Sequence record: NC_071007.1
Reading direction: 5' to 3' (one strand)
Length of the DNA stretch: 64,000 nt
In this document: positions 32,538 to 60,692 of the stretch, piece after piece
Layout of the letters: every line of letters begins with the position of its first letter
Position numbering within the stretch: position 1 is the stretch's first letter
The notes under the pieces: model-generated
The model's database searches: none
Seen by the model: the letters and a program-made list of their open reading frames with translations, nothing else
Told to the model about the DNA's origin: nothing
Made by a program: the position numbers and the translations under genes

Positions 32538-33449
32538 TTACTCCTCTAAATACTTTTTCCACTTACCAGTTTGAGAGTTCAGTTGCTGTAAAATCTTGGT
32601 GTTTATATGCATGATGCTATTAAGGGATTTTACACCTACGTTGAGAGGATGAATTGCATTTTTAATGACACTTTTATCTTCGCTTGGAATATTCCAAGTC
32701 GAATCGTAAATACCGCGGCCCTTACATTCCTCATTACACTTATTTAACACCTGAACCCACTGTTCCAAAACCGCATTTCCTGTTTCACCAATTTTTTTCA
32801 AATCTGGAAGAATGGGTTTGATTGATTGACAAATTTCTTCTACTCTTTCAGCTGTATCAGCAAAAATCAATTTTTCATCCAATCTTTGTAAAGCAGAACC
32901 TGTCTTACTGACTAGTTCTAAAAAGTGTTTTTCAGAACTGGTATCAATTCTCCCAGCATTTAAAAGTCTAATCGCATTTTTAATGAGTTCATTTTGATTG
33001 TTAGGATTCTTTTCTTTGGTTTGGAGCAAATCTTTAGCAATGAACTCTAACTCCACAGACGCGTCAATTATTGTTTGTATTTCTATTCGTAAAACCCCTT
33101 TATCCTTTAAGGTTACATGGGATGTTTCTTTCTTGTTAGCGTTTTCAATAGCATTTAGATTGGTTTCTATACTTTTAACTGTTTGCGAAGATTCCTTTTT
33201 GTTTCCAAAAATAAAATCTCTTATGGCCTTTATTAAAGCTTTAATCATCTCATAAACTTTAATTGCCCCTGCTTTAATTGCACTACCAAAACCTTCCTGT
33301 CCAGCGATTTGTCCTAAATCGCAATTATTCAGTTTAAGAACGGTTTGGGTATAAATTGAATTTGGTGATTTAAAATCTTTATTGCAAATTGATTCAAATC
33401 CAAATATGGTTGTAAAGGCGTGATCTATTGTTTCTGTTGTTACTTCCAT
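32538..33449 (-). CDS. Internal head protein paralog (shared leader plus variable C-terminus), 303 aa
   Basis: N-terminus DHAFTTIFGFESICNKDFK...QTVLKLN...AGQEGFGSAIKAGA...IRDFIFG is nearly collinear with 42526..43533 and 59685..60692. Confidence 0.75.
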   Translation of the reverse strand: MEVTTETIDHAFTTIFGFESICNKDFKSPNSIYTQTVLKLNNCDLGQIAGQEGFGSAIKAGAIKVYEMIKALIKAIRDFIFGNKKESSQTVKSIETNLNAIENANKKETSHVTLKDKGVLRIEIQTIIDASVELEFIAKDLLQTKEKNPNNQNELIKNAIRLLNAGRIDTSSEKHFLELVSKTGSALQRLDEKLIFADTAERVEEICQSIKPILPDLKKIGETGNAVLEQWVQVLNKCNEECKGRGIYDSTWNIPSEDKSVIKNAIHPLNVGVKSLNSIMHINTKILQQLNSQTGKWKKYLEE

Positions 33450-33457
33450 AGATTTTC

Positions 33458-34807
33458 CTATTTTCCAGATTTATATTTTTCTTGTCGTTTCAAAAACAAA
33501 CTTAATACGCATGTTCTTTTTAACAATGGTCTTAAATCTCCATTGACTGGTAAATAGTCTTGTCGATATCCGACAAGAATTCCTTTACGAATAATCAATG
33601 TGTCATCCGGGCCGATATATTGATACCGAACAGGATGACCTGGTTCAAGATATCCTACATCACCATTATGCCATTCTATTTGAACTATCTCACCTTCATT
33701 AATTGAATTCTGAGATAAAGCAGCACATAGGTTTCCAGTTGGGTTTGGATCGATTGGAATGTATTCATTACCATCACCTCTCGAAGAGAGTTTGAACTCT
33801 TGCAAAGCATCTGCTCTGGTAATGACTGCTCTTCCTTTTTCGTAATGCGTTCCTGTTTCACCAGAGACCGCCGTTCCTAAAACAACACGTTTACCTACAC
33901 CAGTGTTTTGTTTACGGATATCAGCATTATCATCATGGCTTGATTGCCCGGTTGCAATAATGGTCATCGAAACATCAGAACGATAAAACGTGTAATCTAA
34001 GGTAGGAATTTTATCTTGAGGAACTTTAATGATATCAACAGGTCTGTGATGTGTTTCACATAACGTAGTGTTATAAAGCGGGTAAACCCACCAATAATTT
34101 TGTTTGTAAAATGCACCCAGTCCTTTTGAATAAATTCCGTACTCATTTTGGGTTTGCAAATATTTGGGAACGTCAATTAACCGTGTCCCTTCCGGTATTA
34201 AAATTTGATTATAGTTATTAATGTTATCAAAAGGTTCATGAATATAAAGTCCTTTGTAAGGAGGACAATCTTTCATATCCACTTTTTTACTGTAATAATC
34301 CATTACTAATTTTAATACATTACCGGGATTATTCATTAAGAAGTTTTCACTTATTTGAATATTCCTGAGTTTAGAAAACCCCTTATCCATCAATTGGAAT
34401 TCATATTCCGCTAACGAAACATTATCAAACCCTTTCATGTTACCAACATTAGATACTTGACCTTCTGTTCGAAGGTCTCTATCATTGGTAGGAATAATGA
34501 CAAACTCCCTGACAATTCGTTGCTGTTCAGTGTCTGCAATAACTTGAATTGTTAAATTATCGCGATAAGGTATGATCTCATCAAAATAAACGCTGGGTTG
34601 AAGTTTGAGTTTAATACCAATTTTTTCTGATCTAGCATTAATCATATCTGCTATTTCAGTAAAGTGGGTGATACTGATAACATTAATTTGTTTTTTAGGA
34701 GTAATAATGACAGCATTTAGTTCGATTGTCAAAGATAAGTTAACTTTATGTTTATCGGTTAACCTAGCCTGCTTCAAGAACCCCTTTATTTGTGCTTCTA
34801 AGCTCAT
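33458..34807 (-). CDS. Virion structural protein, possible baseplate hub-like (phiKZ gp101-like position), 449 aa
   Basis: Synteny; YQTQNEYGIYSKGLGAFYK and EWHNGDVGYLEPGHPVRY segments. Hub assignment is inference. Confidence 0.55.
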   Translation of the reverse strand: MSLEAQIKGFLKQARLTDKHKVNLSLTIELNAVIITPKKQINVISITHFTEIADMINARSEKIGIKLKLQPSVYFDEIIPYRDNLTIQVIADTEQQRIVREFVIIPTNDRDLRTEGQVSNVGNMKGFDNVSLAEYEFQLMDKGFSKLRNIQISENFLMNNPGNVLKLVMDYYSKKVDMKDCPPYKGLYIHEPFDNINNYNQILIPEGTRLIDVPKYLQTQNEYGIYSKGLGAFYKQNYWWVYPLYNTTLCETHHRPVDIIKVPQDKIPTLDYTFYRSDVSMTIIATGQSSHDDNADIRKQNTGVGKRVVLGTAVSGETGTHYEKGRAVITRADALQEFKLSSRGDGNEYIPIDPNPTGNLCAALSQNSINEGEIVQIEWHNGDVGYLEPGHPVRYQYIGPDDTLIIRKGILVGYRQDYLPVNGDLRPLLKRTCVLSLFLKRQEKYKSGK

Positions 34808-34810
34808 CCT

Positions 34811-35479
34811 TTAATCTCCTAGTCCAAACGGATTAGAGGAAGAGAACATGTCGTCCATTGTTACTGGAGCGCCTTTAACAATAGATGGCTCATGATAAAG
34901 ACCTTGTTCTGCTTCTTTGAATATGCTTAAGTGCGAAATAAAAGAAGGTCCTTCCCTGGTATCGTACCCGTATCTCCAAGTTGTCGTCAGTGCGTCTAGT
35001 AATACAAGTTCCGTATTATGGCTATTACCACAGCTTTTATTGATTTCTTGCATTTGGTATTGCCGATACCAACCAAAAATATATTTAGCAATTTTTTCTA
35101 GTATTTCTAACTCTTGCATTTTTGGTCGTTCTAACCAAGGTAACTTCCCCATCACCTCACACCAAGTAGAAATATACTCTTGGATATTTGTATACATTGG
35201 GATGATGTCTTTTGAAGGATACCTAAATGAAAATCCTGCGTTTTCCCCCATGTATAAAAACATATCACAAAGTCTAGCAATTGTGATCGGTCTTTCAATA
35301 ACTTGACCAAACATCTCCAATCCCATAATCGGTGGATGTTTTTCCATTTGTTTAATTTGGTCAAAACTTAAGAAATACTGCCTTGGTGCAAAAATATGAA
35401 ACGTTTTATTACTAATGTATTCATAGAGCGCCACCAGGCGCTCTCTATTGTACATATAACGTTCTACATCCATTGTCAA
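34811..35479 (-). CDS. Conserved hypothetical protein (phiKZ gp100-like position), 222 aa
   Basis: Intact ORF in the structural operon. Confidence 0.55.
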   Translation of the reverse strand: MTMDVERYMYNRERLVALYEYISNKTFHIFAPRQYFLSFDQIKQMEKHPPIMGLEMFGQVIERPITIARLCDMFLYMGENAGFSFRYPSKDIIPMYTNIQEYISTWCEVMGKLPWLERPKMQELEILEKIAKYIFGWYRQYQMQEINKSCGNSHNTELVLLDALTTTWRYGYDTREGPSFISHLSIFKEAEQGLYHEPSIVKGAPVTMDDMFSSSNPFGLGD

Positions 35480-35488
35480 TACCTTTTG

Positions 35489-36781: not shown

Positions 36782-36791
36782 TTACTCAACC

Positions 36792-38333: not shown

Positions 38334-38373
38334 AGCTATGGTTCCCTAGTTCATAATTCATAACATCAATGAT

Positions 38374-38405
38374 TTCTCCTTACTCCGATTAAGGAGTAAG
38401 GAGAA
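38374..38405. terminator. Intergenic hairpin (13-bp stem)
   Basis: TTCTCCTTACTCC-GATTAA-GGAGTAAGGAGAA. Confidence 0.7.
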
Positions 38406-38412
38406 TTTGACA

Positions 38413-39381: not shown

Positions 39382-39384
39382 TCG

Positions 39385-40272
39385 TTATCCTTTAAATTCA
39401 GATTCTTTTGTTTCAGGTTTAACACTATTGGCGTTATTAGAGATGGCGTTAAGCATACCTGTGATTTTAGTGCGAATAGATCCAAGGAGTTTAGTGTTCT
39501 TTGTTTCCTCTTTAGCTGTATCCACTGTTTCCTTCTGCTCAGCTTTAGCCGCCTGTTGGATCTCATTAGTGACGTCATCGCTTACACTTGGACCTTTACG
39601 CATTTTCTCTGCCGCTGTTTCTGCTTCTTTAACTGCTTGTTCCAACGCAGTTGTGACTGCTTTTGAAGCATCGGATGCTTTCTTACGCATCTCGGTATAA
39701 ACAGCACCCAATTGTCCTACTGTTTTTGCATTAGCAATACGAGAAGTAGCTGCTTTGCAATTCTCAATAGCTGTTTCCAGTGTTGGGTATTTCTTCATTA
39801 GATTTTCAAGTTCAACACTTTCTCCGAGTCCTTTAAAATAACTCAAGGGATTGGTTAATTTAGTCTCTTCCTTGATCGGTGCATTCATGTCAAGTTTACT
39901 TAATGCTTCTAATGACTCCACTGCCTTTTTATCTGCTTCTTCAGCGACTTTCTTACCATCACCAAAGAAAAACTCTTTGATTTTACGTAATGTTTCAATA
40001 ATGGCTTTATAAGCAGCTTCACCAGAACTCTTGAGTGTATCTACCCAACTTTCAGAACCTTGGAAACCGTGAAGTTTTAATACAGTCATACCGTAGGCTT
40101 CAGTTCCAGACATTGCAGCAAAGTCTAGTTGTTCTTTGCTTAACACACCACTATAACCATCAAGGATGTCAACAACATGATCAATGTCACTTTCTTTAAT
40201 AACTGCTAATTCGGGTTCAACACCATAAGGAAATTCTGACAATTTATCATCAATAACATTTGACTCAATCAT
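39385..40272 (-). CDS. Internal head protein paralog (295 aa)
   Basis: DHVVDILDG...GTEA...TVLKLHGFQGSES...AIIETLRKIKEFFFG is a diverged form of the shared leader. Confidence 0.7.
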   Translation of the reverse strand: MIESNVIDDKLSEFPYGVEPELAVIKESDIDHVVDILDGYSGVLSKEQLDFAAMSGTEAYGMTVLKLHGFQGSESWVDTLKSSGEAAYKAIIETLRKIKEFFFGDGKKVAEEADKKAVESLEALSKLDMNAPIKEETKLTNPLSYFKGLGESVELENLMKKYPTLETAIENCKAATSRIANAKTVGQLGAVYTEMRKKASDASKAVTTALEQAVKEAETAAEKMRKGPSVSDDVTNEIQQAAKAEQKETVDTAKEETKNTKLLGSIRTKITGMLNAISNNANSVKPETKESEFKG

Positions 40273-40847: not shown

Positions 40848-41368
40848 ACTGTCACCTCAACCGTTCCAGTAAAAATAGGATGTGTGTTTACCACAGAGAT
40901 AGTTAATTTATTATCCTGTTTACCAAGCATTACATCAGAAATCTGTAGCTCCCAAAAACCTAATACTCGACAAAACAAATAAAACTGTTTTACTAGCATC
41001 TCATCAAAGCCATCAGGAATCGTTATAGCGGATTCCGGATATTTAACAAGTGGTTTATTAGGTTCTGTTGGAAAAGCGTTTACAAAGCTTCCCATGTCTG
41101 TTTGTGAATGACTTATTTGTTTAATTAACGTTTGATCATTAAAAATGGTTAAATCAATGTTTTTTGGAAAGAAAGAACCAATGTTAATCTTTTTACTTAA
41201 AATCCCACGATGGGAAAAAAGATCTTTTAATATGACATTGTCTTGGTTACTTGAAACGAATCCTAAACCATTTAAATCAGTTTGAATTTCTGTTTCGTTA
41301 AGTTCGTTAAACAATCTCATCACATCGTATTTCAGTCCTAACTGATTTACTGTAATGATATCAATCAT
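40844..41368 (-). CDS. Hypothetical, probably virion-associated protein (174 aa)
   Basis: Coupled ORF; C-terminal THPIFTGTVEV resembles the SYGYYGEIPV end of the domain in 38413..39381. Confidence 0.5.
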   Translation of the reverse strand: MIDIITVNQLGLKYDVMRLFNELNETEIQTDLNGLGFVSSNQDNVILKDLFSHRGILSKKINIGSFFPKNIDLTIFNDQTLIKQISHSQTDMGSFVNAFPTEPNKPLVKYPESAITIPDGFDEMLVKQFYLFCRVLGFWELQISDVMLGKQDNKLTISVVNTHPIFTGTVEVTV

Positions 41369-42447
41369 TCATTAATCCCCGCTTCGCAGAAATCCAATGC
41401 ACCATCAATAGAACTTGTTACGTAGTTGATTGAACGACCATTAAGCGTTTTACTTAATGTAATCAACCAGTTTAAATAAGTTTTATGTCTAGTACCTAAA
41501 GCTTCACCGTGTTTGTTAATATAAGAAACTACTTCTTTCTCAAAAATACGATGGAGTTCTCCCACGTTCTTTTGATTGGATCGAACCTTATTAATCAAAT
41601 CAGCGATACTTGTTAAGGTACTATCAATAATAAAACTGGTAGGACCAAATGTCGGTGATTTTAATTTTGATTCAATTGTTGTGTTATCAAAATAACAAGG
41701 GGTGTTAATAATTCGTTCAGCAGTCGAAGCCTGATAGACGAAATATCGATTCCCTGGTAACACACCTGAATGATAAGATATAACTCCATCAGAACCTTTT
41801 GGACCAATTTGTAAATTAAATTTATTTACAAATAACCGGTTAACATCTTCGATTTGAGTATTCAAATCAAAATGATTAGGTTCTATTTTTATATGATCCA
41901 ATAATCCCTTATAAACTGTTACAGCTGTGGTGTAAAAATCATTTACTGCAATAATAGATTCCTTTACCCACTGGCCGTCTTCAGTAACTTTGCTAGGGAT
42001 GATTAGTCGTTTAACAGAACTTGGATATTTTTCATCTTTAGTTTTTAAACCGTAACGTTTACGACGAGATGAAATGCGAAAACGTCGATTATCAATTCGA
42101 GTGATTTTGTTGTTAATTAAATTAACAATCCAAGCAACAACATCTTTAGCAAATTGAATCAAGGAACGTAAAGCACTTGCTGCTTTTTCTTTAAAACTTT
42201 CTGTGCCATCAACAGGGTTATTTAATTGTAAAGAAGATTTATTTTTCCCAAATTCTTTAATTACAGTAGAAAGAATTTCGCCTTGTCCTTTAAAAGATTC
42301 CGTCCCTGAAACGTCTTCTGTCTCTTCAACCTTAATTTCTTTACCAATAAAGAAATTAAGACTTTCTTCAATATTATCTACCCGATCACTATAAAAATCA
42401 TCTTGGGTATTTTTATCACTATCTTTGGGCAAAATAGTTGCAGTCAT
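41365..42447 (-). CDS. Internal head protein (360 aa)
   Basis: AAGGAG SD; acidic N-terminus with two GTESFK sites followed by the amphipathic KEKAASALRSLIQFAKDVVAWI helix. Confidence 0.7.
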   Translation of the reverse strand: MTATILPKDSDKNTQDDFYSDRVDNIEESLNFFIGKEIKVEETEDVSGTESFKGQGEILSTVIKEFGKNKSSLQLNNPVDGTESFKEKAASALRSLIQFAKDVVAWIVNLINNKITRIDNRRFRISSRRKRYGLKTKDEKYPSSVKRLIIPSKVTEDGQWVKESIIAVNDFYTTAVTVYKGLLDHIKIEPNHFDLNTQIEDVNRLFVNKFNLQIGPKGSDGVISYHSGVLPGNRYFVYQASTAERIINTPCYFDNTTIESKLKSPTFGPTSFIIDSTLTSIADLINKVRSNQKNVGELHRIFEKEVVSYINKHGEALGTRHKTYLNWLITLSKTLNGRSINYVTSSIDGALDFCEAGINE

Positions 42448-42520: not shown

Positions 42521-42525
42521 TTTAA

Positions 42526-43533
42526 TTAGCTATTCATCCATGCTTCAAATTCTTCAAGAGAACCAGTTGGGACGGTAAGATTATCAATCTTAGAATTTCC
42601 ACCAACAATTTCTTTATTAATTTTTGAAATAGCGCTGCCTACTTGAATAATGAAATTGTCACATTCAGCAACTAGTTTAGCCATTTTAGTTGCGGCTTTG
42701 CCTAGCGCTTGAGTGTATTTCAACACAGCTTCTGCTTTAGTGTGTTCATTACCATCTTTAAGTAATTTCTCGTAATAGACGGTTGCTCTTTCCAATGATT
42801 CATTGACGTTTTGCAATACGTCTTTTGCAACAGTACGGAACTTTTCTGCTGCTGTAATAATTTTATTCCCATTTTCAACACTTTGGATTACAGCAAAGGC
42901 TTCAATCTCTTCAGTACCTTCCTTTTTATCCAATCGAGAAAAAGATTCAGACAACACGCGGAAAGCGTTTAATAACGTCTGATGATCTCGTTTACCGTCT
43001 AAATTTATTGTTACTTTACCAGTAATTCCACCTTGGACATAACCTTCAATTTTTGCGTCACCAACGTCATTGAAATATTCGCTCATAAAGGTGACGTAGG
43101 GTGCGAACCGGACTTCAATAGTCTTTGGTGTTGCAGCTTTTTTAATTTTATTAACACTAGGTGCAAGTTGATCTGTTTTCTTTTTGACAACTTCTTCTAA
43201 ATCAGGTTGTTTTTTAATTGTTTCTAAAACAACCTTTGTTTCTTTTTCGATTTCTTTTACCTGAAAATCCTTGACTTTACTTTTACTACCAAAGAAGAAC
43301 TCTTTGATACCTTTAATCAAGTTCCAAATCATTTCCAGTACTTTCTTAGCACCTTCTTTAATAGCGCCGCCCAAACCTTCCTGACCTGCAATAGCAGTAA
43401 GATCACAACCATTCAGTCGCAAAACTGTCTGGGTGTATTTGGCGTTAGTTGTTTTAAAATCTTTATTGCAAATGGATTCAAACCCATCAATGGTATCAAA
43501 AACATGATCCATTTGATCAATATTTACGTTCAT
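42526..43533 (-). CDS. Internal head protein paralog (335 aa)
   Basis: AAGGGA SD before MNVNIDQMDHVF at 43533 (track start 43587 is over-extended); GFES and GQEG sites; shared leader. Confidence 0.75.
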   Translation of the reverse strand: MNVNIDQMDHVFDTIDGFESICNKDFKTTNAKYTQTVLRLNGCDLTAIAGQEGLGGAIKEGAKKVLEMIWNLIKGIKEFFFGSKSKVKDFQVKEIEKETKVVLETIKKQPDLEEVVKKKTDQLAPSVNKIKKAATPKTIEVRFAPYVTFMSEYFNDVGDAKIEGYVQGGITGKVTINLDGKRDHQTLLNAFRVLSESFSRLDKKEGTEEIEAFAVIQSVENGNKIITAAEKFRTVAKDVLQNVNESLERATVYYEKLLKDGNEHTKAEAVLKYTQALGKAATKMAKLVAECDNFIIQVGSAISKINKEIVGGNSKIDNLTVPTGSLEEFEAWMNS

Positions 43534-43589
43534 AAATTCCCTTATTAATTTTTGTTTGATGTAATCAAAATATTGACTAGATAACAAAG

Positions 43590-43655: not shown

Positions 43656-44822
43656 TTAGTAGTGAGCTTTAACCAGAGAGATTTGAGCTTGCAACAGATC
43701 GGCGGCAACACTCAGTGCGCCCTTCTGTACTTTCAGACCAGCACGGCAGGCAGCTTTGATTGCAGCGATGTCTTCTTTGATGTCGGTCTTATCTTCAGCC
43801 GCCATGCGCTCCAGAGAAGCGATGGTTTGGTCACGTTGGGCAGTCAGCGCTTTGCTATCCAGCTTGCTAAATTGGAGAGCTTTAGCAGAAGCTACAACAT
43901 CGTTAGCAATGCTACGCAGTTCTGCTTGGCCCATAGCAGGTTGGTCTTTTTGTGCTTCACCACCATTGATACTAGAAATGGCAACTTTAGCCAGGCCGGA
44001 TACAGTCTTCGGATAAACAACAGTAAAGGTACCAGTACCTACAGTAACCTTAAAGGTTTCGGTATCTTCGTTAGAAGCGGTAGCTGATGCAGTCCCCATT
44101 GCTTTAACCGCATTAACAGCAGACTGAACACCAGAAAGAGCACCTTCTTTACTGGCGGCTTTAACTGCGGTTTCAACGGCACCAATAACTTTACCAACAT
44201 CAGCAGCCGGAGAAACTTTACCGTTCTTCGGCAACCAACCAGCACTTGCAGAAAGAGTTACCTTTTCTTTGGGTTCTTTAACTACAGAAGTGCCCAGGTT
44301 CTTGGCTTGTTTTTCCAGACCTTTAAACTTGTTAAAGAGACCTTGGAAGAAAGCGATGAAACCATTGTAAAGATCGATAAAGAACTTCTTGATCGCTTCT
44401 TTAGCTTTACCAGCACGCTCTTTGAAAGATTCGATACCGGCAACGGCATTCATGGTGGCGGTGGAAGCATCAGCGAAACTTTCAGCACCTTGAACTTCTA
44501 CGGTGGTGCCAAAACGAGCAGCGATCTTAGCGGCACGCTTCATCTTGTCATGGAACAGAGCAGAGTTGAATTCAGTGGCACCATTCAGCATGGATTCCAT
44601 ACCGCTGATTTCTTCTTCCAGCTCTTCAACCTTTTCGGTCAGAATTTCGATAGCGGTATCGTTCTTTTCAATTTCTTTATCTTGCTCAGCCAGTTCGGTT
44701 TCAACTTGGGCCAGCTCTTTTTCTACAACAGCTTCTGCTACCGCTTCTGCAGTAACTTCTACTTGATGATCCAGATCAGCGCTTTCGGTACCGGCCACAG
44801 CTGCAAAAATAGTATCGTACAT
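43656..44822 (-). CDS. Abundant internal head/ejection protein (388 aa)
   Basis: Acidic propeptide with GTES, GMES, GAES and GIES sites; capsid-like codon bias; position like the phiKZ gp93-97 cluster. Confidence 0.75.
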   Translation of the reverse strand: MYDTIFAAVAGTESADLDHQVEVTAEAVAEAVVEKELAQVETELAEQDKEIEKNDTAIEILTEKVEELEEEISGMESMLNGATEFNSALFHDKMKRAAKIAARFGTTVEVQGAESFADASTATMNAVAGIESFKERAGKAKEAIKKFFIDLYNGFIAFFQGLFNKFKGLEKQAKNLGTSVVKEPKEKVTLSASAGWLPKNGKVSPAADVGKVIGAVETAVKAASKEGALSGVQSAVNAVKAMGTASATASNEDTETFKVTVGTGTFTVVYPKTVSGLAKVAISSINGGEAQKDQPAMGQAELRSIANDVVASAKALQFSKLDSKALTAQRDQTIASLERMAAEDKTDIKEDIAAIKAACRAGLKVQKGALSVAADLLQAQISLVKAHY

Positions 44823-44875: not shown

Positions 44876-45931
44876 TTAATTAAATTGTTTACTCAGGAAG
44901 GAAATTACTCCACCCACATAATCATCCAGGTATAAAGTCACCTTGGGTAAAAACCCACTGTAAAATGCAAATACCGGAACGTTTCCTTTCAGCCTTGATT
45001 CAAGATCACGGACTAAATTGAAACTAATGTTCCCTTTAAGAGATTCCAGATGGAGGTAACTCTTACCTACCACAGTATTGAAATCAGCAATGTATTTGGC
45101 ATATTTTTCATTAGCAGCAGAAAGTGCTTTGAAAAGCTCTACACCTTGATTAACTGTTGTCAGAAGTTTAATCACATCTTCCATTGCAAAAGATGTATTG
45201 TTTTCTTCAACAAAAACTTCATCAGAATGAACAGAAAACTGCTTTTGTTCTGAGTTAAACACAAAGTATTTACCACCTGGCAACACTTCGGAAGCTGACA
45301 TAGAATCACGTTCTTCATTAAACTTAGGAACCGGGTATTTTAGTTCATCCAGTTTATGAAGTAATGAAATTGCATCTTCGGTTGTTTTGATATCAACCAT
45401 GTTTTTTAGAAGTTGAAGTTCTTTCTTATAAAAACCTTCCAAATCTAGCTCAAAACGTTTTATATTATTTAAAACAGAAAACAATGTTTCAGCATCACTT
45501 TGGATTAAATCTGGATTACCGCTACTAGTTGTCTTAATAAGAAATTCTTTTGTAAAAGCAATCTCTTTATTATCGCTATTATTTTTAGCTCTAGATGCAA
45601 TCATTCCTAAAGCCATACGTCGAGTACCCAACGTCGTAATAATTGCACTAGAAGCGCTCCTAAGCGCTTTTGAAGCACCTTCATGAGCTTTGGCAGTAGT
45701 CCACTGTAATCCAGTGGTGACTGAGTTTTGAACAGAAGAAAAAATATTAGATAATAGAGATTCATTACCCGTAATCAATTCATCCGATTTAATAAATGGT
45801 TCTAATGTCTCTTGAAGAAGGTTGGTTTCAATTGGGTAGTGGGTCTCAATTTCCACAGGAACATTAGAAACAGCCTGGAGCGAATATTCGCTCCAGGAAG
45901 TAGAGGACATTATTTCGTCATCGTGCATCAT
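44876..45931 (-). CDS. Internal head protein (351 aa)
   Basis: Acidic N-terminus ending in TGNESLL; in the head-protein cluster. Confidence 0.65.
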   Translation of the reverse strand: MMHDDEIMSSTSWSEYSLQAVSNVPVEIETHYPIETNLLQETLEPFIKSDELITGNESLLSNIFSSVQNSVTTGLQWTTAKAHEGASKALRSASSAIITTLGTRRMALGMIASRAKNNSDNKEIAFTKEFLIKTTSSGNPDLIQSDAETLFSVLNNIKRFELDLEGFYKKELQLLKNMVDIKTTEDAISLLHKLDELKYPVPKFNEERDSMSASEVLPGGKYFVFNSEQKQFSVHSDEVFVEENNTSFAMEDVIKLLTTVNQGVELFKALSAANEKYAKYIADFNTVVGKSYLHLESLKGNISFNLVRDLESRLKGNVPVFAFYSGFLPKVTLYLDDYVGGVISFLSKQFN

Positions 45932-50761: not shown

Positions 50762-50786
50762 ATCTAATTTAAGCTATGGAGTAATT

Positions 50787-53705
50787 ATGGACTTTTCAGT
50801 TCTTGAAAAATATGCAAATAACCCCAGCCGAATTATACCGGTTATTTTTAATGACATTGAACAAGCAGCCGATGCTGGAGGTGGACAATTAAATGCAACG
50901 GGCCATCCTTTTGCATATATGGTTGATTTGATCATTGGAACTAATTACGGTTTTATTAGCCGTCTTGGAGATAGTACAGCAAAAACTTATCCAGCCCATG
51001 CACGCAACTTACAAGACTTATCAAAGGTAATGAGTGATGAGGATTGGGTTGGGGTGTTCTCAGAACCTAGCGGAGAAACAATTCGTTGGATCATTGGGAT
51101 TGAATCTCTTGGGAAGATTGCGAAAGAGTACACTGAGCAAGATGGGACTTTAGTTAATAGTTATAAAAAATTAGAGTTACCACCCGACACTCAGTTTTAT
51201 GTCGCAGGAATTCCATTTTTATTGGAAAACCCAGTAGAAATTAGAATTATGGAACACGGTGGAATACAAGTTGTTTATAATAGCAATTATAATTCTCCAT
51301 TTAAACCGTTGGTGGATAATTCACCTGAACGTGAAATTATTCAAATCAATGGTGAAAATAAATTAGCTATCCATCTTCCAGTAAGACAACTGGAAATTAA
51401 AGAGTACCCAAGCCGGCCTGTTAACATCACTTCTGGTTATCGTGAAACCATTACTTTTAGTGATCGTCTTTTTGGTATTCGCGCTTTTATCACCCCGGAT
51501 GGTTCAAATAAACGTCAAGAACTTTCTATTGTTTATAACAATGAAATTTTTGATCCTAATCAACCGACTCTTGTTATTGATATGATTGACGATCATAATT
51601 TTCAAGCAAGCATTCCTACTGTATATTTGCAAAATGAAACTGCATTAGGTCGGTTAACTATTTTGACATATACTACCCGTGGAGAACTTTATCAAGATCT
51701 TTCTACCTTAAGAACGCAAGAACATAAAGTTGGTTATTATGATTATCGTAACGAAAAAGGTAAGCTCTCTACTTATTCTGAAGAGTTACGAAATGTTAAT
51801 GACGTGTTGGTGGACAGTCTTACTCCAATCACTGGGGGTAAAAACGGTTCTAGTTTTGAAGAAATCAAGAACATGGTTATTTACGGATATCGTCGTAGAC
51901 AAATCCCTATTTCCAATAGTGATTTTAGCCAACTGTTATCAAGAGCAGGATTTGATAATGCAAAATCAATTGATACAGTAAGCCGTCGTCTGTTCAGAAC
52001 TACCAAAGATCTACCCATCCAAGAAAATAAACTATTTGAAGGGGAAGATGTTGCTCGGTTTAATAGTTCTATTGGAACATATACTGGGAGTACTCTGACA
52101 TCTATTGAGGAATTAGTAAGTTCCGGTAACGCCATTGATAACGGCAGACGAATTACTATCTTGCGAGGATGTGTTTACGACATCACTGAGCAAACTCCAC
52201 GTCTTGTTCCTTTGTATGAAATTGAAGCATTAAAGAACGCAAGTAATCAAGTTAAAATAGATACCATGGGTAACCACTCAATGGTTTATCTTCCATTCAT
52301 GTATGTTATCGATGTCACTAATGATCGAGCAGAGGTCAGATGTTATCGAGTCACAAAACCAGAGATTCGGTATCAGACCTTTAGGTATGAAAATGCAACT
52401 CTAGGAATGCAAGTTTCTGTTGGTGCAATTAATATTGTATCTGATGAAACAGGTTACACTATTTCCTTAGAAACGAAATCAACCGATACATATAAACAAC
52501 TTTCGAATGATGTTGTTGGAATTCAATTAAGTTTTAAAGTAGAAGGTTCGACAGCTCCTGCTGTAATGAAAGGAACACTCTTAGGTAAAACTTCAGAAGG
52601 TGAACGTATATTCCAATTTAAGATTCCAAGTCGTTTTGACATTGATGCAAATGACACAATTGATTTGAAAAACTTTAATCAGTTTGGAAGACCACAAGAA
52701 ACGATTCGAGTTAATCTGGAAGAAACGGCTAACTTTATCTTTACTTATAGTGGAGATGGTCTGTCATTAAAATCCAGTACTGACTTTAAAATTGATCAAA
52801 CCTTGTTTAACAATATCACTGTTGCTATTATTGAGACTGAATACAAACTAACGTTTGGACAAACCTTAAACAGTTTGTACACTCGTATTCGTCCCATGAT
52901 AGGTGAAGCGCAGTATGAGAAATATCTTCAAGGTGTTCCTGAGACTTATTTAACAGATACATTTGTATACGAAAATGGTAAGTTAAAGATTGTTGACGGT
53001 AAAGCAGTTATTGAACATCGTAAAGGAGAAGTTGTTTATAATACAGATGGTTCTATTAGATGGAAACACCTGGCTGGAACAACTGTTTATGATGAAGATG
53101 GAAACCCGGTACTATTGAAGCCACGTGAACTCAAATATCATTGGGATTTCATCGGATTTGATTTTAACTATCTCCTAAGTGAAGATGATTACGATGCCGA
53201 TTATGTTACGTTGGTAGAAGATTTCTTTGCACAACAGGTAGATAACGAAGTCATTGAGTTTAATAAGAAAACATTGGATGAAACCAAGATCGTTTTCAAA
53301 CCTCGTTCCACTATGGGGTTTACTCAAGTTATCCTTAATGAAAACATCACCAAGACAATTCGAACTGATATTCGTTTGGCGGTTACATACTACTTAACAA
53401 CAGAAGGAATGAGTAATGAGGATTTGAAAAAGTCCTTGAAAAACAATACTCATAAAGTTTCTAATGAACAATTGGCAAAAGGAACTTTCTCTGTCAGTGA
53501 GTTGACTAACCAGCTGAGAACATCTGATGCTGTTGCAGTTAAGATTATTGCCACAGCGGGAATTGATAACGTTGATGTTATTACCAACATTGATGAAACA
53601 AATGGATTTTCAATTCGTAAAGTCTTGGATCAAACATCAGACCGACTGTTAACTATTAAAGAGGATATTGATATTACATTTAAAGCTCATATCCAAAATA
53701 AATAA
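50787..53705 (+). CDS. Baseplate wedge protein, T4 gp6/baseplate-J-like (phiKZ gp87-like), 972 aa
   Basis: TGGKNGSSFEEIKNMVIYGYRRRQIPISNSDF matches the GG-x-D/N-x-E-x2-E-I-R...Q-R-x-V-T-x2-D-Y pattern of gp6-like wedge proteins. Confidence 0.7.
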   Translation: MDFSVLEKYANNPSRIIPVIFNDIEQAADAGGGQLNATGHPFAYMVDLIIGTNYGFISRLGDSTAKTYPAHARNLQDLSKVMSDEDWVGVFSEPSGETIRWIIGIESLGKIAKEYTEQDGTLVNSYKKLELPPDTQFYVAGIPFLLENPVEIRIMEHGGIQVVYNSNYNSPFKPLVDNSPEREIIQINGENKLAIHLPVRQLEIKEYPSRPVNITSGYRETITFSDRLFGIRAFITPDGSNKRQELSIVYNNEIFDPNQPTLVIDMIDDHNFQASIPTVYLQNETALGRLTILTYTTRGELYQDLSTLRTQEHKVGYYDYRNEKGKLSTYSEELRNVNDVLVDSLTPITGGKNGSSFEEIKNMVIYGYRRRQIPISNSDFSQLLSRAGFDNAKSIDTVSRRLFRTTKDLPIQENKLFEGEDVARFNSSIGTYTGSTLTSIEELVSSGNAIDNGRRITILRGCVYDITEQTPRLVPLYEIEALKNASNQVKIDTMGNHSMVYLPFMYVIDVTNDRAEVRCYRVTKPEIRYQTFRYENATLGMQVSVGAINIVSDETGYTISLETKSTDTYKQLSNDVVGIQLSFKVEGSTAPAVMKGTLLGKTSEGERIFQFKIPSRFDIDANDTIDLKNFNQFGRPQETIRVNLEETANFIFTYSGDGLSLKSSTDFKIDQTLFNNITVAIIETEYKLTFGQTLNSLYTRIRPMIGEAQYEKYLQGVPETYLTDTFVYENGKLKIVDGKAVIEHRKGEVVYNTDGSIRWKHLAGTTVYDEDGNPVLLKPRELKYHWDFIGFDFNYLLSEDDYDADYVTLVEDFFAQQVDNEVIEFNKKTLDETKIVFKPRSTMGFTQVILNENITKTIRTDIRLAVTYYLTTEGMSNEDLKKSLKNNTHKVSNEQLAKGTFSVSELTNQLRTSDAVAVKIIATAGIDNVDVITNIDETNGFSIRKVLDQTSDRLLTIKEDIDITFKAHIQNK

Positions 53706-53714
53706 CAAATAAAC

Positions 53715-53747: not shown

Positions 53748-53756
53748 AATATTTGT

Positions 53757-54428: not shown

Positions 54429-54432
54429 GTTA

Positions 54433-55980
54433 TTACACCTTCATTGGGAGTCCAAGCTCCTTCAGTAAGTTGTTCATCGGAGTTTTGACTTGGGGAAGTT
54501 CTTTAAGAATCCTGACAACGTCAATGCTTTCTTGCTTCAAATCAAATTCTGGATAATAGGCTTTTAATACCTTTGTATCATCAGGAAGTAAACGAGGAAG
54601 ATTTAGTGAACCATCAGAATTTTTAGAAAAGAATTCTTGTTCATAACCAGGTGTTGCTTCTTGATGTGCAAGGATAATTTTCTCGGCATCTTGGGTAACG
54701 TACGCCATCCCAAGGGTTTGGAGAGATGTAATCCATTTACTGATCGAAGCTGTGGTGATAGCACAACGCTGAAGAACATCAGAAATCAAATTAACAGATT
54801 CATTAAAGTTTGTAATAGCATTTGAGAATGCCATATAGGAACCGATTAACCCTGAATGTTGGGGATACATCTGAACAACAGAATCCAGGACTTGAGCAAA
54901 TTTATCATCTACCGCGTCTTTGAGATTTGAGTAATCAAAGCCGGTAATACGATGATACTCATTTTCATTAACACGTTTGATGTAAGACTTTTGAAGTTCT
55001 TGATAAATATTAACGTGGTCTTCTGAGATCGCCTGCTTGGTTTGTTCTAAATTGGCTTTTAATGTTTCACTGATAACTTTAAAGGTAGTCTGGACACCCA
55101 GATCTTTAATTTCAATCTCATAAATCTGTTCAACCAACCGTTTTGCCATTTCAGCATATTGGGTCGGATCCAGATTTTCCATTACCAATTTATCCAAATC
55201 ACTGGTAAATGCAATAACATCTGCTTCAGTCACATTCTTACTTTTAACAATGTTTCTGAAATTATTGGTGATTCGCACATAGTTGTTTTTAACATTGCGG
55301 GACTTTTGACTACCCTCAATTAACAATTTATATGCTTTATCAATATCTTCAGATGCTTTATTCATTGCATTGACTACATCACTCGCACTTTGCGCGCGAT
55401 TCTTAATGATAGTCATTGCTTCTTTACCAGTCACACCTTTTGGAAGAGTTTCCATAAACTCATCTAAATTAAAGCTAACTGCTTCTGGTGTTCCACCAAA
55501 CGCACGAATCATAAAGTTCCGCAGGAGAGGTTTCAATTTCTCCATGTGTTGTTCGGCGGCAGCAATTTCTTTTTCGGTTTTATTAAAACCAAACAATGAT
55601 TTTAATTTGGTCAGCGCCCAATCAATAATGGCACCTAGCCATTTACGAATTGCTTTGATGATTGTCACAAATCCTTCTTTCAATGTAGAAAGAAAAGACT
55701 CCCCACCCATACGAGCATTGTGTTTATCATAAACAGGGAGGAAACTTTCAGTTCCAGAGATTTTTAACGCGGAAAAGGATTCACGGTGTAACCGGCCTTT
55801 GCTAAAAAACTCTTTAGTAGAACGTTGAATAACTTTTAAAGCTTCCTGACCCGTTGTTTCATAAAGATCATCAAGGGAGATTAAATCTTCTCCCTCATCG
55901 TTTTTTGCAAGAACGGTGACTTTTTCACTTTCGCCATGGGGAGAAAGTTGAATGACACTTGAGAGTGTAACATCAGACAT
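54433..55980 (-). CDS. Internal head protein (phiKZ gp86-like position), ~515 aa
   Basis: GGAG SD before MSDVTL at 55980; GQEA, GTES and GGES sites followed by the STLKEGFVTIIKAIRKWLGAIIDW amphipathic helix. Confidence 0.7.
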   Translation of the reverse strand: MSDVTLSSVIQLSPHGESEKVTVLAKNDEGEDLISLDDLYETTGQEALKVIQRSTKEFFSKGRLHRESFSALKISGTESFLPVYDKHNARMGGESFLSTLKEGFVTIIKAIRKWLGAIIDWALTKLKSLFGFNKTEKEIAAAEQHMEKLKPLLRNFMIRAFGGTPEAVSFNLDEFMETLPKGVTGKEAMTIIKNRAQSASDVVNAMNKASEDIDKAYKLLIEGSQKSRNVKNNYVRITNNFRNIVKSKNVTEADVIAFTSDLDKLVMENLDPTQYAEMAKRLVEQIYEIEIKDLGVQTTFKVISETLKANLEQTKQAISEDHVNIYQELQKSYIKRVNENEYHRITGFDYSNLKDAVDDKFAQVLDSVVQMYPQHSGLIGSYMAFSNAITNFNESVNLISDVLQRCAITTASISKWITSLQTLGMAYVTQDAEKIILAHQEATPGYEQEFFSKNSDGSLNLPRLLPDDTKVLKAYYPEFDLKQESIDVVRILKELPQVKTPMNNLLKELGLPMKV

Positions 55981-55985
55981 TACGT

Positions 55986-56408
55986 TTACTCCACATAGCA
56001 ATGTTGAAAGTCTTTGTATTTACCTTCTGCTTCTTTCACTAAGGTTTCAACCAAATCAGTGTAACCGGGTGTTTCAACAACGCTACCTTCAAATTCAATG
56101 GGTGCAATTTGAAGTGTAATCTTGTCAAGAGAAGCGATGTTTTTAATAGCTTCGTTTAATTGGCCATTAAAGTGAGTGATTTCAGCAATAACCAAGTTAC
56201 CGGCAACCGGATGAACTTCATTCCAGTAAGCAAGCACATAACGATAAAAATCGCCTTGATGTTCAGCTGGAATATTCAGTTTATTTTTCACCATAAACAA
56301 AGCGCGAACGTAAGCGGTTCGAACAACTTCAATCTGTTTTACAGGATCGGTTACACCCAAGCCAATCAACGCTTGTTTAACGGTGACAATGTGAGATAAA
56401 TGGGACAT
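55986..56408 (-). CDS. Conserved virion protein (phiKZ gp85-like position), 140 aa
   Basis: GAGGA SD; synteny. Confidence 0.55.
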   Translation of the reverse strand: MSHLSHIVTVKQALIGLGVTDPVKQIEVVRTAYVRALFMVKNKLNIPAEHQGDFYRYVLAYWNEVHPVAGNLVIAEITHFNGQLNEAIKNIASLDKITLQIAPIEFEGSVVETPGYTDLVETLVKEAEGKYKDFQHCYVE

Positions 56409-56410
56409 GT

Positions 56411-57766: not shown

Positions 57767-57852
57767 TGTTATACTCCGGAGTAAATTAAAAAGAAAGAGG
57801 CAATAGTTTAGACCACCTCTTAATAAGACGTCATAACATTCGGGCCATTATT

Positions 57853-59571
57853 ATGCAAAAGAAATTAGTAGCTCGTGTTTGTAAACACGCTTATCTATCG
57901 TTTTATAAATACAATAAAGAAAAAGATCTTCTTACAGCAAAGATTACAAATATCTTTGATGATGGTTCAAGAGAAAGTCAATTAGTTCATATTGAAGATT
58001 ATAAGCGTGACTTCTATATTGTCAAAAAGAAATACAGAACATTTAAAGATTCACGCGACTATATTGAATTGAACAAATGCGATAAATTCCAATCTAACGA
58101 GGGGCGTTTAGCGACTAATATTTCTAAAGTTCTTTTTGGTAGACCTGATCGTCAATCTGATTTAAATGAACTTAAGAATAATCCTTTTATTTTTGGTTGT
58201 CAGGAAACCGTCCCTGTTGTTTTTAAACAACGGTTCTATGACAAATACCCTGACCATCAACCACAAGAAGCCTATAGTGTTGCAGCGTATGACGTTGAAA
58301 CATTTATTTTGCCAGATGGTTCCGTTGGACCTGTGTGTATGGCTTCCACCACATCCGAGAATCGCGTATATTGGTCTGGGTTACGCTCTATCTTTAAAGG
58401 CGAATCTGATCACGTTATCATTAAGAAATTAAATGAGTACGCTGATAAGTACCTTAAAGAGTACATGGAAAAACACAATGTTGTTATTCATTTCCAATTA
58501 GAAGATACTCCCGGAAAGGTTGTCTATAACAATATTCAGTTCTGGCATGAATTAGGTCCTGACTACGTTGTTTCTTGGAACGCTAACTTTGATATGGAAG
58601 CAAACCAAAGAGAACTGAAAAATGAAGGGTTTGATTTAGCAAGAACGTATTCCGATCCTAATACACCAAATGGTTATCAGGATTATTTTTATTATCCAGG
58701 TCGTGAATTTAAAACTAAAGTTGATGGGACTAAAACACCCCTTGATAACCATGAACGGTTTCCTGTTGTTAAAGCACCTGCTAAATGGCAGTGGTTTGAT
58801 GGCATGTCATTTTACGCTATTAAACGTGCACCGCAAGGAAAGAAAGAGTCGTATTCACTTCAAGCTACTGCTCAGCATGAGAAAGTGCTCTCAAAGCTTT
58901 ATACAGACGTTGGGAACCATTTACAAGAAGGTTCTGCTGAATGGCATAAATGGATGTTGGAAAACGAACCTTATTTGTATTCCATGTACAACATTCAAGA
59001 TAACTGGGTTATTGAAGATATTAATCGGGCAACTAATGATTATTCAATGTCACTTCCGTCATTGTTGACTTCTTCTGAACTAAACTCGTACCAATCTCAA
59101 CCAAGCATGATTTCGGATATGCTTTCTTTTATTGCATTGAAGAATGGTTATGTTTGGGGGACAGTAGGTCGTCGTAAAGAAGATCCTTTTAAAGAAATGA
59201 AACCAGACCTTCGTGATTGGATCGCCCTGCTTCATGCAGAGATGAATGAAGAGAATGGTAAGAAACTTTATGAAGGATTAAATAACTGGGGTTCTAAAGC
59301 CCATGGTTACACTGATGACATTGACGTTAGTTCAGCGTATCCTTCTGTAACTGTTAGTTTGAACGTTAGTAACAAAACAACCAAGCTAGAGGTATGTAAG
59401 ATAGAAGGGATTGATCGCATTGAATATAGACGACTTGGGGTAAACTACGCAAGTAGTCCATTAGCTAATGCAGTTACCTTGGCGTCTACTATTTATGGGA
59501 TGCCTTCATTGATTGAAATTAATAACTTCTATACGACTAAAGTTAAAGCCTTTATTGAAGAACAAAATTAA
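57853..59571 (+). CDS. Split family B DNA polymerase, exonuclease plus motif A part (phiKZ gp82-like), 572 aa
   Basis: ExoI AYDVETF, ExoII SWNANFD, ExoIII YNIQD, motif A DIDVSSAYPS; ends ~75 aa later without motifs B and C. Confidence 0.85.
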   Translation: MQKKLVARVCKHAYLSFYKYNKEKDLLTAKITNIFDDGSRESQLVHIEDYKRDFYIVKKKYRTFKDSRDYIELNKCDKFQSNEGRLATNISKVLFGRPDRQSDLNELKNNPFIFGCQETVPVVFKQRFYDKYPDHQPQEAYSVAAYDVETFILPDGSVGPVCMASTTSENRVYWSGLRSIFKGESDHVIIKKLNEYADKYLKEYMEKHNVVIHFQLEDTPGKVVYNNIQFWHELGPDYVVSWNANFDMEANQRELKNEGFDLARTYSDPNTPNGYQDYFYYPGREFKTKVDGTKTPLDNHERFPVVKAPAKWQWFDGMSFYAIKRAPQGKKESYSLQATAQHEKVLSKLYTDVGNHLQEGSAEWHKWMLENEPYLYSMYNIQDNWVIEDINRATNDYSMSLPSLLTSSELNSYQSQPSMISDMLSFIALKNGYVWGTVGRRKEDPFKEMKPDLRDWIALLHAEMNEENGKKLYEGLNNWGSKAHGYTDDIDVSSAYPSVTVSLNVSNKTTKLEVCKIEGIDRIEYRRLGVNYASSPLANAVTLASTIYGMPSLIEINNFYTTKVKAFIEEQN

Positions 59572-59586
59572 TTTTTTAGCCTTAAT

Positions 59587-59619
59587 ATTCCTACCTACTC
59601 CAATGGAGTAGGTAGGAAT
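59587..59619. terminator. Bidirectional hairpin (15-bp stem), near-identical to 32504..32535
   Basis: ATTCCTACCTACTCC-AAT-GGAGTAGGTAGGAAT between convergent genes. Confidence 0.75.
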
Positions 59620-59684
59620 TTATATTATATTTTTGTCAACATCCATAAAGATTGGACCACGACATTATGGGTTAAAAATATTAT

Positions 59685-60692
59685 TTATTTAAAACTAGCG
59701 ACATTGTCATCTAACATAAGCTTATCAAATTCAGCAAGTATTTGTTTACTATTATTATCATTACCAGAAATATTTGCCTCCATTTTGACACAAACATCAG
59801 CAATGTTAAAAATATATTTCTCGCAATCTTTACTGAGTTTTACCAACTTGGCAATAGATTTCCCAAGTTGGATAGTGTAAGTTTCAAGACGTTCGTGTTG
59901 CTTAGTAAGGTTTTCATCTTTCCCAACAAACTGTTTATTCCTGTTCAAAGCTTGGGTTGCAATTTCAAGATCAGCAGTCATAGTCGCAATTAGCTTCTTT
60001 GCTTCTGTACGAACAGAAGCAATAATATTGGCCATTGATTGTCCGTCTTCGACTGCCTTAAAAAGAGCAAGTATTGAACCGTCCTGAGTTCTACCATTTT
60101 CATGGTCTTTGATCATTTTAGTCAGTTTTTCAAGTTCTGCACGAAGCTTGGTCCCGTTATAACCTTCAGCATTACCAAGTGTAGTAATAGAAAGACCTGT
60201 TAGGTCAAGTTTTCTATAGGACGCCGACATAGTCTCTGTCATTACATCCCAGAATTCATTGTAACTTGCAAAACGCACGCTTCCATATTTCCCAGAAAGA
60301 ATACTTTCCAGTTTTGCTTTGGATGCGGTCGCTTCTTCCAATAACTTTTCTAGTTTATGATTTGGAGCGGCCTTGATTACAAATGTCGATTTGGGAATTT
60401 GTTCAATCACTTTTGAAAGACTTGTGTCACTTTTACCAGAACGACTGCCAAAAAAGAATTCCTTAATCGCCCGTAAGAAATTCATGATCATTTCGAGTAT
60501 TTTCTTACCTCCAGCTTTAATAGCGGTACCAAACCCTTCTTGACCAGAGATCGCTCCCATATCTACGCCATTGAGCTTCAGTACAGTTTGAGCGTAGATA
60601 CCATCAGGGGTTTTAAAATCTTTATTAGCAATAGATTCAAATCCAGAAAGTACACTAAAGACATGATCCATTTGTTCAATATTAACGTTCAT
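59685..60692 (-). CDS. Internal head protein paralog (335 aa)
   Basis: MNVNIEQMDHVF...GFES...GQEG...AIKEFFFG leader; similarity to 42526..43533 continues patchily through the body (VRFASY/VRFAPY, AVEDGQ/SVENGN, YTIQLGK/YTQALGK). Confidence 0.75.
   Translation of the reverse strand: MNVNIEQMDHVFSVLSGFESIANKDFKTPDGIYAQTVLKLNGVDMGAISGQEGFGTAIKAGGKKILEMIMNFLRAIKEFFFGSRSGKSDTSLSKVIEQIPKSTFVIKAAPNHKLEKLLEEATASKAKLESILSGKYGSVRFASYNEFWDVMTETMSASYRKLDLTGLSITTLGNAEGYNGTKLRAELEKLTKMIKDHENGRTQDGSILALFKAVEDGQSMANIIASVRTEAKKLIATMTADLEIATQALNRNKQFVGKDENLTKQHERLETYTIQLGKSIAKLVKLSKDCEKYIFNIADVCVKMEANISGNDNNSKQILAEFDKLMLDDNVASFK

Follow-up and report, generated by a model that had tools for sequence, protein, structure and literature searches.

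The 64,000-nucleotide (nt) stretch of record NC_071007.1 analyzed here (the window) harbors four genes whose products share an N-terminal region of about 85 amino acids (aa), the leader, and diverge behind it. The question raised by this locus is what such a leader does; an original prediction saw in it a portable packaging and ejection tag delivering variable effectors together with the phage DNA. According to our analysis, the four genes and a fifth one lying outside the window represent, with a probability of about 0.8, a diverged branch, with short propeptides, of the phiKZ-like internal head proteins (phiKZ_IP, PF12699), the inner-body/ejection mass of Chimalliviridae-type jumbo phages. 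What directly supports this assignment is homology, the invariance of a motif, a leader glutamate (E52) that aligns with a cleavage position mapped elsewhere, a protease gene in the same phage, helical predictions, and the absence of enzyme domains.

The source of the window is Aeromonas phage ZPAH34 (OM810292.1), a jumbo phage of 234,546 bp belonging to the genus Chaoshanvirus. The frame at 42526-43587 (353 aa) shares 99.7% identity with ZPAH34; weaker matches of the same frame were retrieved from about 28 other jumbo-phage records (Aeromonas, Kosakonia, Erwinia, Pantoea, Shewanella, Edwardsiella, and Pseudomonas hosts).

The shared N-terminal module

The four open reading frames (ORFs), all on the minus strand, were confirmed where the original prediction had placed them and are hereafter referred to as P0001 (32538-33449, 303 aa), P0002 (39385-40272, 295 aa), P0003 (42526-43533, 335 aa), and P0004 (59685-60692, 335 aa). 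GenBank labels the first a 'putative virion structural protein' and the other three 'hypothetical protein'. The longest frame of P0003 opens with a TTG (42526-43587, 353 aa), located 18 codons upstream of the ATG annotated in GenBank (42526-43533, 335 aa); the ATG at 43533 is favored because the paralogs all begin with MNVNI/MEVT in the alignment. The fifth paralog (323 aa) was retrieved by searching the whole ZPAH34 record, in which it occupies positions 63416-64387.

An all-against-all BLASTP comparison of the window ORFs confirmed the four dispersed paralogs, their shared N-terminus of about 85 aa, and their divergence after the FFG that closes it. P0001 shares 62.5% identity with P0003 over 96 aa (E 2e-32) and 56.7% with P0004 over 90 aa (E 8e-33), and no similarity to either of them was found past about residue 95. 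P0003 and P0004 are similar over their full length (34% identity, E 1e-51); the claim that two paralogs are exactly 335 aa long and closer to each other therefore holds, given the ATG start of P0003. P0002 is the most diverged, with 28-33% identity to the other three over about 100-120 aa (E 4e-5 to 4e-10), 24 additional N-terminal residues, and GYSG in the position where the others have GFES. Within the leader itself, identity is 57-66% among P0001, P0003, and P0004, and about 30% for P0002.

At the identical residues of the ZPAH34 leaders, codons agree in 50-53% of the cases, versus the 51% expected from codon usage. The synonymous sites are saturated, and the conservation of the leader therefore reflects long-term selection at the protein level rather than chance or recent copying. 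This rules out recent gene conversion as its source in ZPAH34, although such conversion does apply in phage ACP1 (see below). A signal peptide or membrane anchor was ruled out by the charged N-terminus and the amphipathic helix.

A hidden Markov model (HMM) of the leader, run over jumbo-phage genomes, retrieved 54 distinct relatives, with three to ten genes per genome in ten jumbo phages and six in phage EL, four of the latter being partial matches to the helix piece. In phiKZ there was one weak match (gp93); none was found in SPN3US (E<=1) or in 201phi2-1. Kosakonia phage Kc263 (MZ348422.1) gave 10 leader matches (about nine distinct proteins, including those at loci L052, L060, L066, and L067), four of which form a tandem array at 115.6-118.6 kb, and one Kc263 match is annotated 'putative apolipophorin-III'. 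A profile built from the four leaders and searched against a library of 1.84 billion representative proteins retrieved 212 clusters at E<=1e-3, of which 109 reached E<=1e-10; two matches, a leucine-rich repeat protein (P0153) and a repeat protein (P0160), were judged spurious. A scan of IMG/VR with the leader yielded one locus, a word-based protein search seven close relatives, and a PDB sequence search nothing meaningful.

Residues were counted in 148 library relatives. G50 and E52 are present in all of them, G17 in 145, H10 and K59 in 138 each, Y33 in 143, and E19 in 128 (with Asp in 11); 143 relatives have G or S at position 53, and 131 have F at position 54. Among the phage-genome relatives, G50, E52, and G17 each occur in 53 out of 54. 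The two G-x-E motifs are therefore the best-conserved residues of the leader, and they agree with the phiKZ protease, whose reported specificity is S/A/G-x-E (as cited in PMC5694885).

Relationship to the phiKZ_IP family and the predicted cleavage site

Profiles built from the orthologs of each paralog were compared by hhalign with seven internal head proteins, namely the products of the window genes at 43656 and 41365, SPN3US gp53, phiKZ gp93-95, and EL gp63. The comparison revealed profile-level homology with accepted members of PF12699: the P0003/P0004 profile matched this set from end to end (94% probability, E 8e-8, 267 columns), and those of P0002 (86%) and of the fifth paralog (90%) matched it in the leader region only. 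The kinship with phiKZ and SPN3US internal-head paralogs suggested by the original prediction was thus borne out. PF12699 is also matched at E<=1e-3 by 56 of the 146 library relatives and by 10 of the 54 phage-genome relatives.

The two window genes used in this comparison are both labeled 'phiKZ-like internal head protein' in GenBank, and P0003 lies between them. The first (43656-44822, minus strand, 388 aa) matches PF12699 with 127.8 bits (E 8e-37) and PHROG 5750, 'internal head protein', with E 9e-75; the second (41365-42447, minus strand, 360 aa) scores 33.9 bits against PF12699 and carries GTE83/SFKEK followed by a helix (here and below, a slash marks a cleavage position, mapped or predicted). 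In the hhalign and MAFFT alignments, the counterpart of the leader in the 43656 protein is the segment 58-161, with ISGMES... and, further on, AVAGIE/SFKERAGKAKEAIKKFFIDLYNGFIAFFQG (AGIE131/SFKER ... FFQG).

P0002 and P0003 belong to a head-gene block that matches the order of OBP_111-118 and is close to phiKZ gp89-97; P0001, P0004, and the fifth paralog are dispersed outside it. P0002 orthologs hold a conserved position across Aeromonas phages, and also in OBP (OBP_116), SXP01, Kc263, and D3. The fifth paralog corresponds in gene order to OBP_262, an 'internal head protein', and adjoins the virion SNF2 helicase on its downstream side. The trio formed by the SNF2 helicase, the leader-bearing internal head protein, and a ribonuclease occurs in the same order in the ZPAH34 record (61285-65870) and in OBP (235088-239768); since this order is common to an Aeromonas and a Pseudomonas phage, the fifth paralog is an old, positionally fixed member.

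In SPN3US, the prohead protease gp245 removes propeptides of 125 (gp53) and 137 (gp54) residues, which are additionally cut at several internal A-x-E sites (PMC10052503; PMC5694885); semi-tryptic peptides detected by mass spectrometry place the beginning of mature gp53 at (E)GWKETLKDLFER and that of mature gp54 at (E)SLWDDIK (PMC10052503). In a joint MAFFT alignment, E52 shares its column with E125 of SPN3US gp53, E156 of phiKZ gp93, E214 of phiKZ gp94, E131 of EL gp63, E131 of the 43656 protein, and E83 of the 41365 protein; for phiKZ gp93, we infer cleavage at E156 from this alignment. The ZPAH34 sequences that follow the corresponding Glu are (E)GFGTAIKAGGKK, (E)GLGGAIKEGAKK, (E)GFGSAIKAGAIK, (E)GWVDQLKSAGKR, and (E)SWVDTLKSSGEA. 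G50-x-E52 fits an S/A/G-x-E protease site placed before the conserved helix, at the mapped maturation position. A gp175-type (MEROPS S80) protease is encoded by the same phage: positions 32625-33479 of the ZPAH34 record code for a homolog of phiKZ gp175 (31% identity in the segment 12-216, E 8e-22), and the gene order is that of phiKZ gp175-177.

An extended form of the motif, G-x-E-[SG]-hydrophobic, which we take as the prohead-protease site, was counted 22 times among the window ORFs, always within the same 12: P0001-P0004, the genes at 41365, 43656, 54433, 44876, and 45918, the major capsid protein gene, and the ORFs 18952-21798 and 50787-53705; no other window ORF contains it. It is found twice in each paralog (once in P0002), both times within the first 52 residues, and is absent from the C-terminal 190-250 aa. 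The same GxES-plus-helix arrangement had been noticed at 41365, 43656, and 54433, and we found it there as GTES/FKEK, GIES/FKER, and GGES/FLST, respectively, and also at 44876 and 45918. The 54433 gene (54433-55980, minus strand, 515 aa from the annotated start) codes for a virion structural protein (PHROG 14541, E 7e-72) containing SGTES/F and GGES/FLSTLKEGF followed by a helix; with a weak match to PHROG 5750 and a leader-HMM match at residues 90-121 (E 0.008), it is a distant relative built on the same logic. As for the remaining ORFs, the motif occurs three times in the major capsid protein (28086-30254, minus strand, GenBank annotation) and once or twice each in 18952-21798 (plus strand) and 50787-53705 (plus strand, annotated as virion structural protein). 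This distribution would allow the propeptides of these three proteins to be predicted.

On these grounds, residues 1-52 of the leader (1-74 in P0002) are probably a removable propeptide, cut by the gp175-like protease and released in two pieces, and the helix at residues 53-82, ending with FFFG, probably forms the N-terminus of the mature protein. In P0004, the predicted propeptide (residues 1-52, nt 60537-60692; sites GFE19/S and GQE52/G) is followed by the conserved helix (residues 53-82, nt 60447-60536) and by a helical C-terminal part (residues 83-335). The predicted propeptide and the conserved helix correspond to nt 33294-33449 and 33204-33293 in P0001, and to nt 43378-43533 and 43288-43377 in P0003; in P0002, with the predicted cut at GSE74/S, they correspond to nt 40051-40272 and 39961-40050. 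The AlphaFold2 model of P0004 is all-helical (predicted local distance difference test, pLDDT, 61; predicted template modeling score 0.66), and its residues 46-58, around E52, are of low confidence, which, in a moderately reliable model, is compatible with an exposed cleavage site.

The functional boundary is therefore probably not at FFG, because the invariant G50-x-E52 aligns with the mapped cleavage of SPN3US gp53; the evolutionary boundary (FFG) and the proteolytic one (E52) would then be different. The helix was probably conserved for contact with inner-body components or with DNA.

The following pathway can be depicted. The precursor would join the assembling prohead core via its N-terminal region, and the gp175-type protease would then cut twice after Glu, at G17-F-E19/S within the propeptide and at G50-Q-E52/G-F at the maturation site, so that the propeptide of about 52 residues would leave as two pieces. 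The mature protein would consist of the amphipathic helix 53-82 (ending with FFFG) and of a paralog-specific helical region of 190-250 aa; it would remain in the head with the DNA and probably be ejected along with it.

Several observations weigh against this assignment. The PF12699 scores of P0001, P0003, and P0004 (16.3, 17.5, and 22.8 bits, respectively) lie below the gathering threshold of 27, and all three matches fall on the GQEGF-plus-helix piece (profile positions ~84-121); no PF12699 match was found for P0002 in the Pfam scan. For the P0001 profile, the comparison with the internal head proteins gave no more than 42% probability, and this in the leader region only. No similarity of the P0001 and P0002 C-termini to those of the other paralogs was detectable by profile comparison, and the confidence of the AlphaFold2 models is low to moderate (pLDDT 61 for P0004 and 43 for P0001). 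The residue at P3 is always G here, whereas published work gives A-x-E as the preferred motif for SPN3US and S/A/G-x-E for phiKZ. Lastly, the published ZPAH34 paper reports no virion proteomics; the location in the head and the cut at E52 are predictions from sequence.

The C-terminal regions and the alternative explanations

It might also be supposed, although we consider it quite unlikely, that the whole leader of about 85 aa, up to FFG, is a transferable packaging and ejection tag with unrelated effector cargo behind it, such as anti-defense proteins that enter with the DNA; this would be the jumbo-phage equivalent of the T4 arsenal formed by the capsid targeting sequence (CTS) and the Ip proteins. 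The precedent is a real one, as T4 Ip1-3 have the leader alone in common and each of them blocks a different restriction enzyme (PMC12373910). The similarity of P0001 to P0003 and P0004 does end right after FFG, and there are at least three unrelated C-terminal profile classes in ZPAH34 and 42 BLAST clusters of C-termini among the 148 library relatives. Furthermore, two metagenomic proteins (P0012 and P0013) share the leader and the C-terminal ~190 aa of P0001 and carry, directly after the leader, a conserved insert of about 110 aa (RTALFMEMNDKR...YYHxQELYATSNFSSKRIxHL) for which Pfam gave no match; the insert was either lost in ZPAH34 or never acquired. The comparison between orthologs points in both directions: the C-termini of P0003 and P0001 outpace their own leaders (leader versus C-terminus identities of 88% versus 64%, 87% versus 49%, and 87% versus 66%), whereas the two parts evolve at equal rates in the P0002 type, the fifth type, and P0004 (for example, 83% versus 87%, 81% versus 85%, and 78% versus 83%).

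On the other side, P0003 and P0004 are homologous to phiKZ_IP over their full length, and the profiles of their post-FFG regions match that of the fifth-paralog type with 96% probability over 151 collinear columns. The same comparison linked the P0002 type to the long EL/IMG-VR type (72%) and retrieved nothing for the P0001 type, a separate sequence class whose C-terminus ends with the conserved motifs KCNEECKGR and WKKYLE. For the P0001 C-terminus, the protein atlas offered no more than leads, namely viral hypothetical clusters with scores <=0.80, one of which is 19% PF12699. A BLAST single-linkage cluster joining the C-termini of four of the five paralogs was rejected, its links being of 30-35 bits, partly non-collinear, and obtained in a tiny database; the profiles kept only the link between P0003/P0004 and the fifth paralog. 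The invariant G-x-E at 50-52, in turn, places the helix 53-82 probably in the mature protein and not in a removed tag, in line with the maturation cut mapped in SPN3US (PMC10052503).

The search for cargo domains behind the leader, proposed by the original prediction, retrieved no enzyme or other effector domain (Pfam) among the 54 phage-genome and 146 library relatives. Their matches outside PF12699 are to coiled-coil or helical-bundle families, apolipophorin-III being found in 4 + 1 proteins; the four library relatives match Pfam ApoLp-III with E down to 1e-8. These matches hint at a possible lipid binding, of interest given the early infection vesicle. The lengths of the relatives are mostly confined to ~220-370 aa, with the exceptions of a few proteins of 450-490 aa in which the leader starts at residue 200-245, of a truncated one, and of one of 416 aa with an insert. 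The C-termini extend for 150-270 aa past the leader, and total lengths cluster at ~230-260 and 320-350 aa. Both the ZPAH34 proteins modeled with AlphaFold2 (P0001 and P0004) are predicted to be all-helical. When the PDB was searched by Foldseek with the P0004 model, nothing reached E<=0.001; the matches above this limit were generic helical bundles, BAR domains, and ClyA-like proteins. The idea of variable effectors is thus not sustained: the C-termini are predicted to be helical and of limited length, those of P0003 and P0004 belong to a full-length homology with phiKZ_IP, and two of the five types evolve no faster than their leaders.

A further explanation, which we regard as very improbable, would make the paralogs prohead scaffold or core proteins that are broken down and driven out as the head matures, so that they would neither belong to the inner body nor be injected. 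The paralogs are helical, like scaffold proteins; a counterpart of the T4 scaffold (gp22) is unconfirmed in giant phages, and long propeptides might help core formation (PMC5694885). However, the extended cleavage motif is confined to the first 52 residues (two occurrences per protein, one in P0002), so that the bulk of each protein should survive; moreover, SPN3US gp53 and gp54 and phiKZ gp93, gp95, and gp97 are abundant in mature virions, and the three phiKZ proteins are injected (PMC5694885; bioRxiv 10.1101/2024.03.24.586471).

The evolutionary mobility of the leader is best seen in phage ACP1 (PP601403.1), where three paralogs (L016:1501-2424, plus strand; L020:811-1764, minus strand; L025:697-1764, minus strand) combine near-identical leaders with unrelated C-termini. 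L016 and L020 share 90% nt identity over the first ~240 nt (73-100% per 30-nt window); past the leader, the windows fall to 53, 40, and 27%, a random level, with the breakpoint at codons ~80-90. In the third paralog, which has another C-terminus, leader identity is 75-76% at the nt level and 80-85% at the aa level. The leader tree agrees with this picture, C-terminal classes g0 and g4 being interleaved in it: a clade with 100/99 support joins ACP1 L016, with a P0001-type C-terminus, to ACP1 L020, PS1 L017, and AerS_266 L024, with P0003/4-type C-termini. This indicates, from the sequences, a recent recombination or gene conversion between ACP1 paralogs, exchanging either the leader or the C-terminus; no comparably recent exchange was seen in ZPAH34. 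The leader thus behaves as a separate evolutionary unit, and this is the sense in which the sharp leader/cargo boundary previously proposed holds; as a functional cut it probably does not, since that would fall at E52.

This exchange and the mixing of C-terminal classes also count in favor of the tag-plus-effector explanation discussed above. A related possibility, in our opinion unlikely, is that propeptide and helix together represent a cassette recombined onto new helical C-termini, which would act as injected factors of early infection, either with an anti-defense role (as T4 Ip1-3) or as amphipathic lipid-binding bundles building the early phage infection vesicle; the latter option is considered because four relatives match apolipophorin-III and phiKZ gp93 co-localizes with recruited membrane. 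If this were true, the fast-evolving P0001 and P0003 would be host-range determinants and the leader a loading handle for nucleus-forming phages. Most likely, however, the ZPAH34 paralogs represent an ordinary, though modular, case of phiKZ-like internal head proteins and no new kind of system.

Comparison with known systems and significance

The closest parallel is provided by SPN3US. PF12699 corresponds to paralog family A of Ali et al., of which SPN3US has two members, phiKZ five, and phiPA3 seven (PMC5694885); the authors described the N-termini of gp53 and gp54 as conserved and suggested for the long propeptides a role like that of the T4 CTS (PMC5694885). Like the ZPAH34 proteins, gp53 and gp54, which are highly abundant ejection proteins, are paralogs with a conserved N-terminal region and a diverged remainder, and they lose an N-terminal propeptide to the prohead protease after x-E, as we predict for ZPAH34. 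Their mature N-terminus (PMC10052503) reads G/S-aromatic-x-x-x-[IL]K, continues with an amphipathic helix, and matches the ZPAH34 leader in every column of the alignment. The differences concern the propeptides, acidic and of 125 and 137 aa in SPN3US versus a predicted ~52 aa (74 in P0002) in ZPAH34; the protease motif, A-x-E versus an invariable G at P3; and the number of copies, two in SPN3US versus five of the short-propeptide branch plus at least two classical PF12699 genes in ZPAH34.

In phiKZ, the PF12699 members gp92, gp93, gp94, gp95, gp97, gp162, and gp163 undergo proteolysis, the injected proteins include gp90, gp93, gp95, and gp97, and C-terminal fusions to mNeonGreen, sfCherry2, and FLAG are packaged and delivered (bioRxiv 10.1101/2024.03.24.586471). 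Profile comparison places the inner-body proteins gp92-gp97, gp162, and gp163 in the same family as the ZPAH34 paralogs; residues 151-182 of gp93 (SLE156/DLKEKLKEAGKKALEIIKK...) correspond to leader positions 47-78, and the two phages share the head-gene neighborhood and a gp175-type protease. The phiKZ proteins are longer (372-548 aa), with an N-terminal region of 150-260 aa before the site, whereas the ZPAH34 paralogs score under the Pfam threshold and the first 45 residues of their leader (H10, G17-x-E19, Y33, L38) have no clear phiKZ counterpart.

The T4 proteins Ip1-3 and Alt resemble the ZPAH34 family in that a conserved N-terminal leader stands on otherwise unrelated small proteins; this leader directs its protein into the core of the prohead, the prohead protease cuts it off after Glu, and the proteins are injected with the DNA (PMC3012670, PMC9026906, PMC12373910). 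However, the T4 CTS is of 10-20 aa, with an L/I-x-E site and no helix kept on the mature protein, whereas the ZPAH34 leader would have ~52 aa before a G-x-E cut and a 30-aa helix retained (both predicted). The ZPAH34 leader is not a short CTS of the T4 type, and there is no sequence relationship between the two; the resemblance would be one of the way of working, by analogy, and not of family membership. Anti-restriction targets have been demonstrated for the T4 Ip proteins.

As regards natural packaging and injection, relatives in the family are indeed packaged, cleaved, and injected (PMC10052503; bioRxiv 10.1101/2024.03.24.586471); for ZPAH34 itself, we infer packaging, cleavage, injection, and a targeting role of the propeptide. 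A portable tag is not a new concept either: the T4 CTS, a conserved N-terminal sequence removed by gp21 and carried by unrelated injected proteins, is the classical example and has served for packaging green fluorescent protein and nucleases (PMC3012670, PMC9026906), and a targeting role has already been proposed for the SPN3US propeptides. The portable-tag interpretation is the accepted working model of the family, and the fusion experiment suggested by the original prediction has in essence already been done with full-length phiKZ proteins, gp93 fusions being packaged and injected. What is new is modest: a short-propeptide subfamily of about 200 clusters lying under the Pfam threshold, together with an exact prediction of the cleavage site, the distinction between the proteolytic and the recombinational boundary, and the leader exchange in ACP1.

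The present analysis provides a family assignment for five ZPAH34 genes, four annotated as hypothetical and one as 'putative virion structural protein', and the same assignment extends to about 200 related protein clusters in public data. With about 52 aa to the predicted cut (about 82 aa with the helix) and a conserved G-x-E-G-F site, the compact leader may represent a more practical starting point for loading foreign proteins into nucleus-forming jumbo phages than the 125-250-aa propeptides of SPN3US and phiKZ. Moreover, the exchange of leaders in ACP1 bears on how the repertoire of injected proteins may diversify in these phages.

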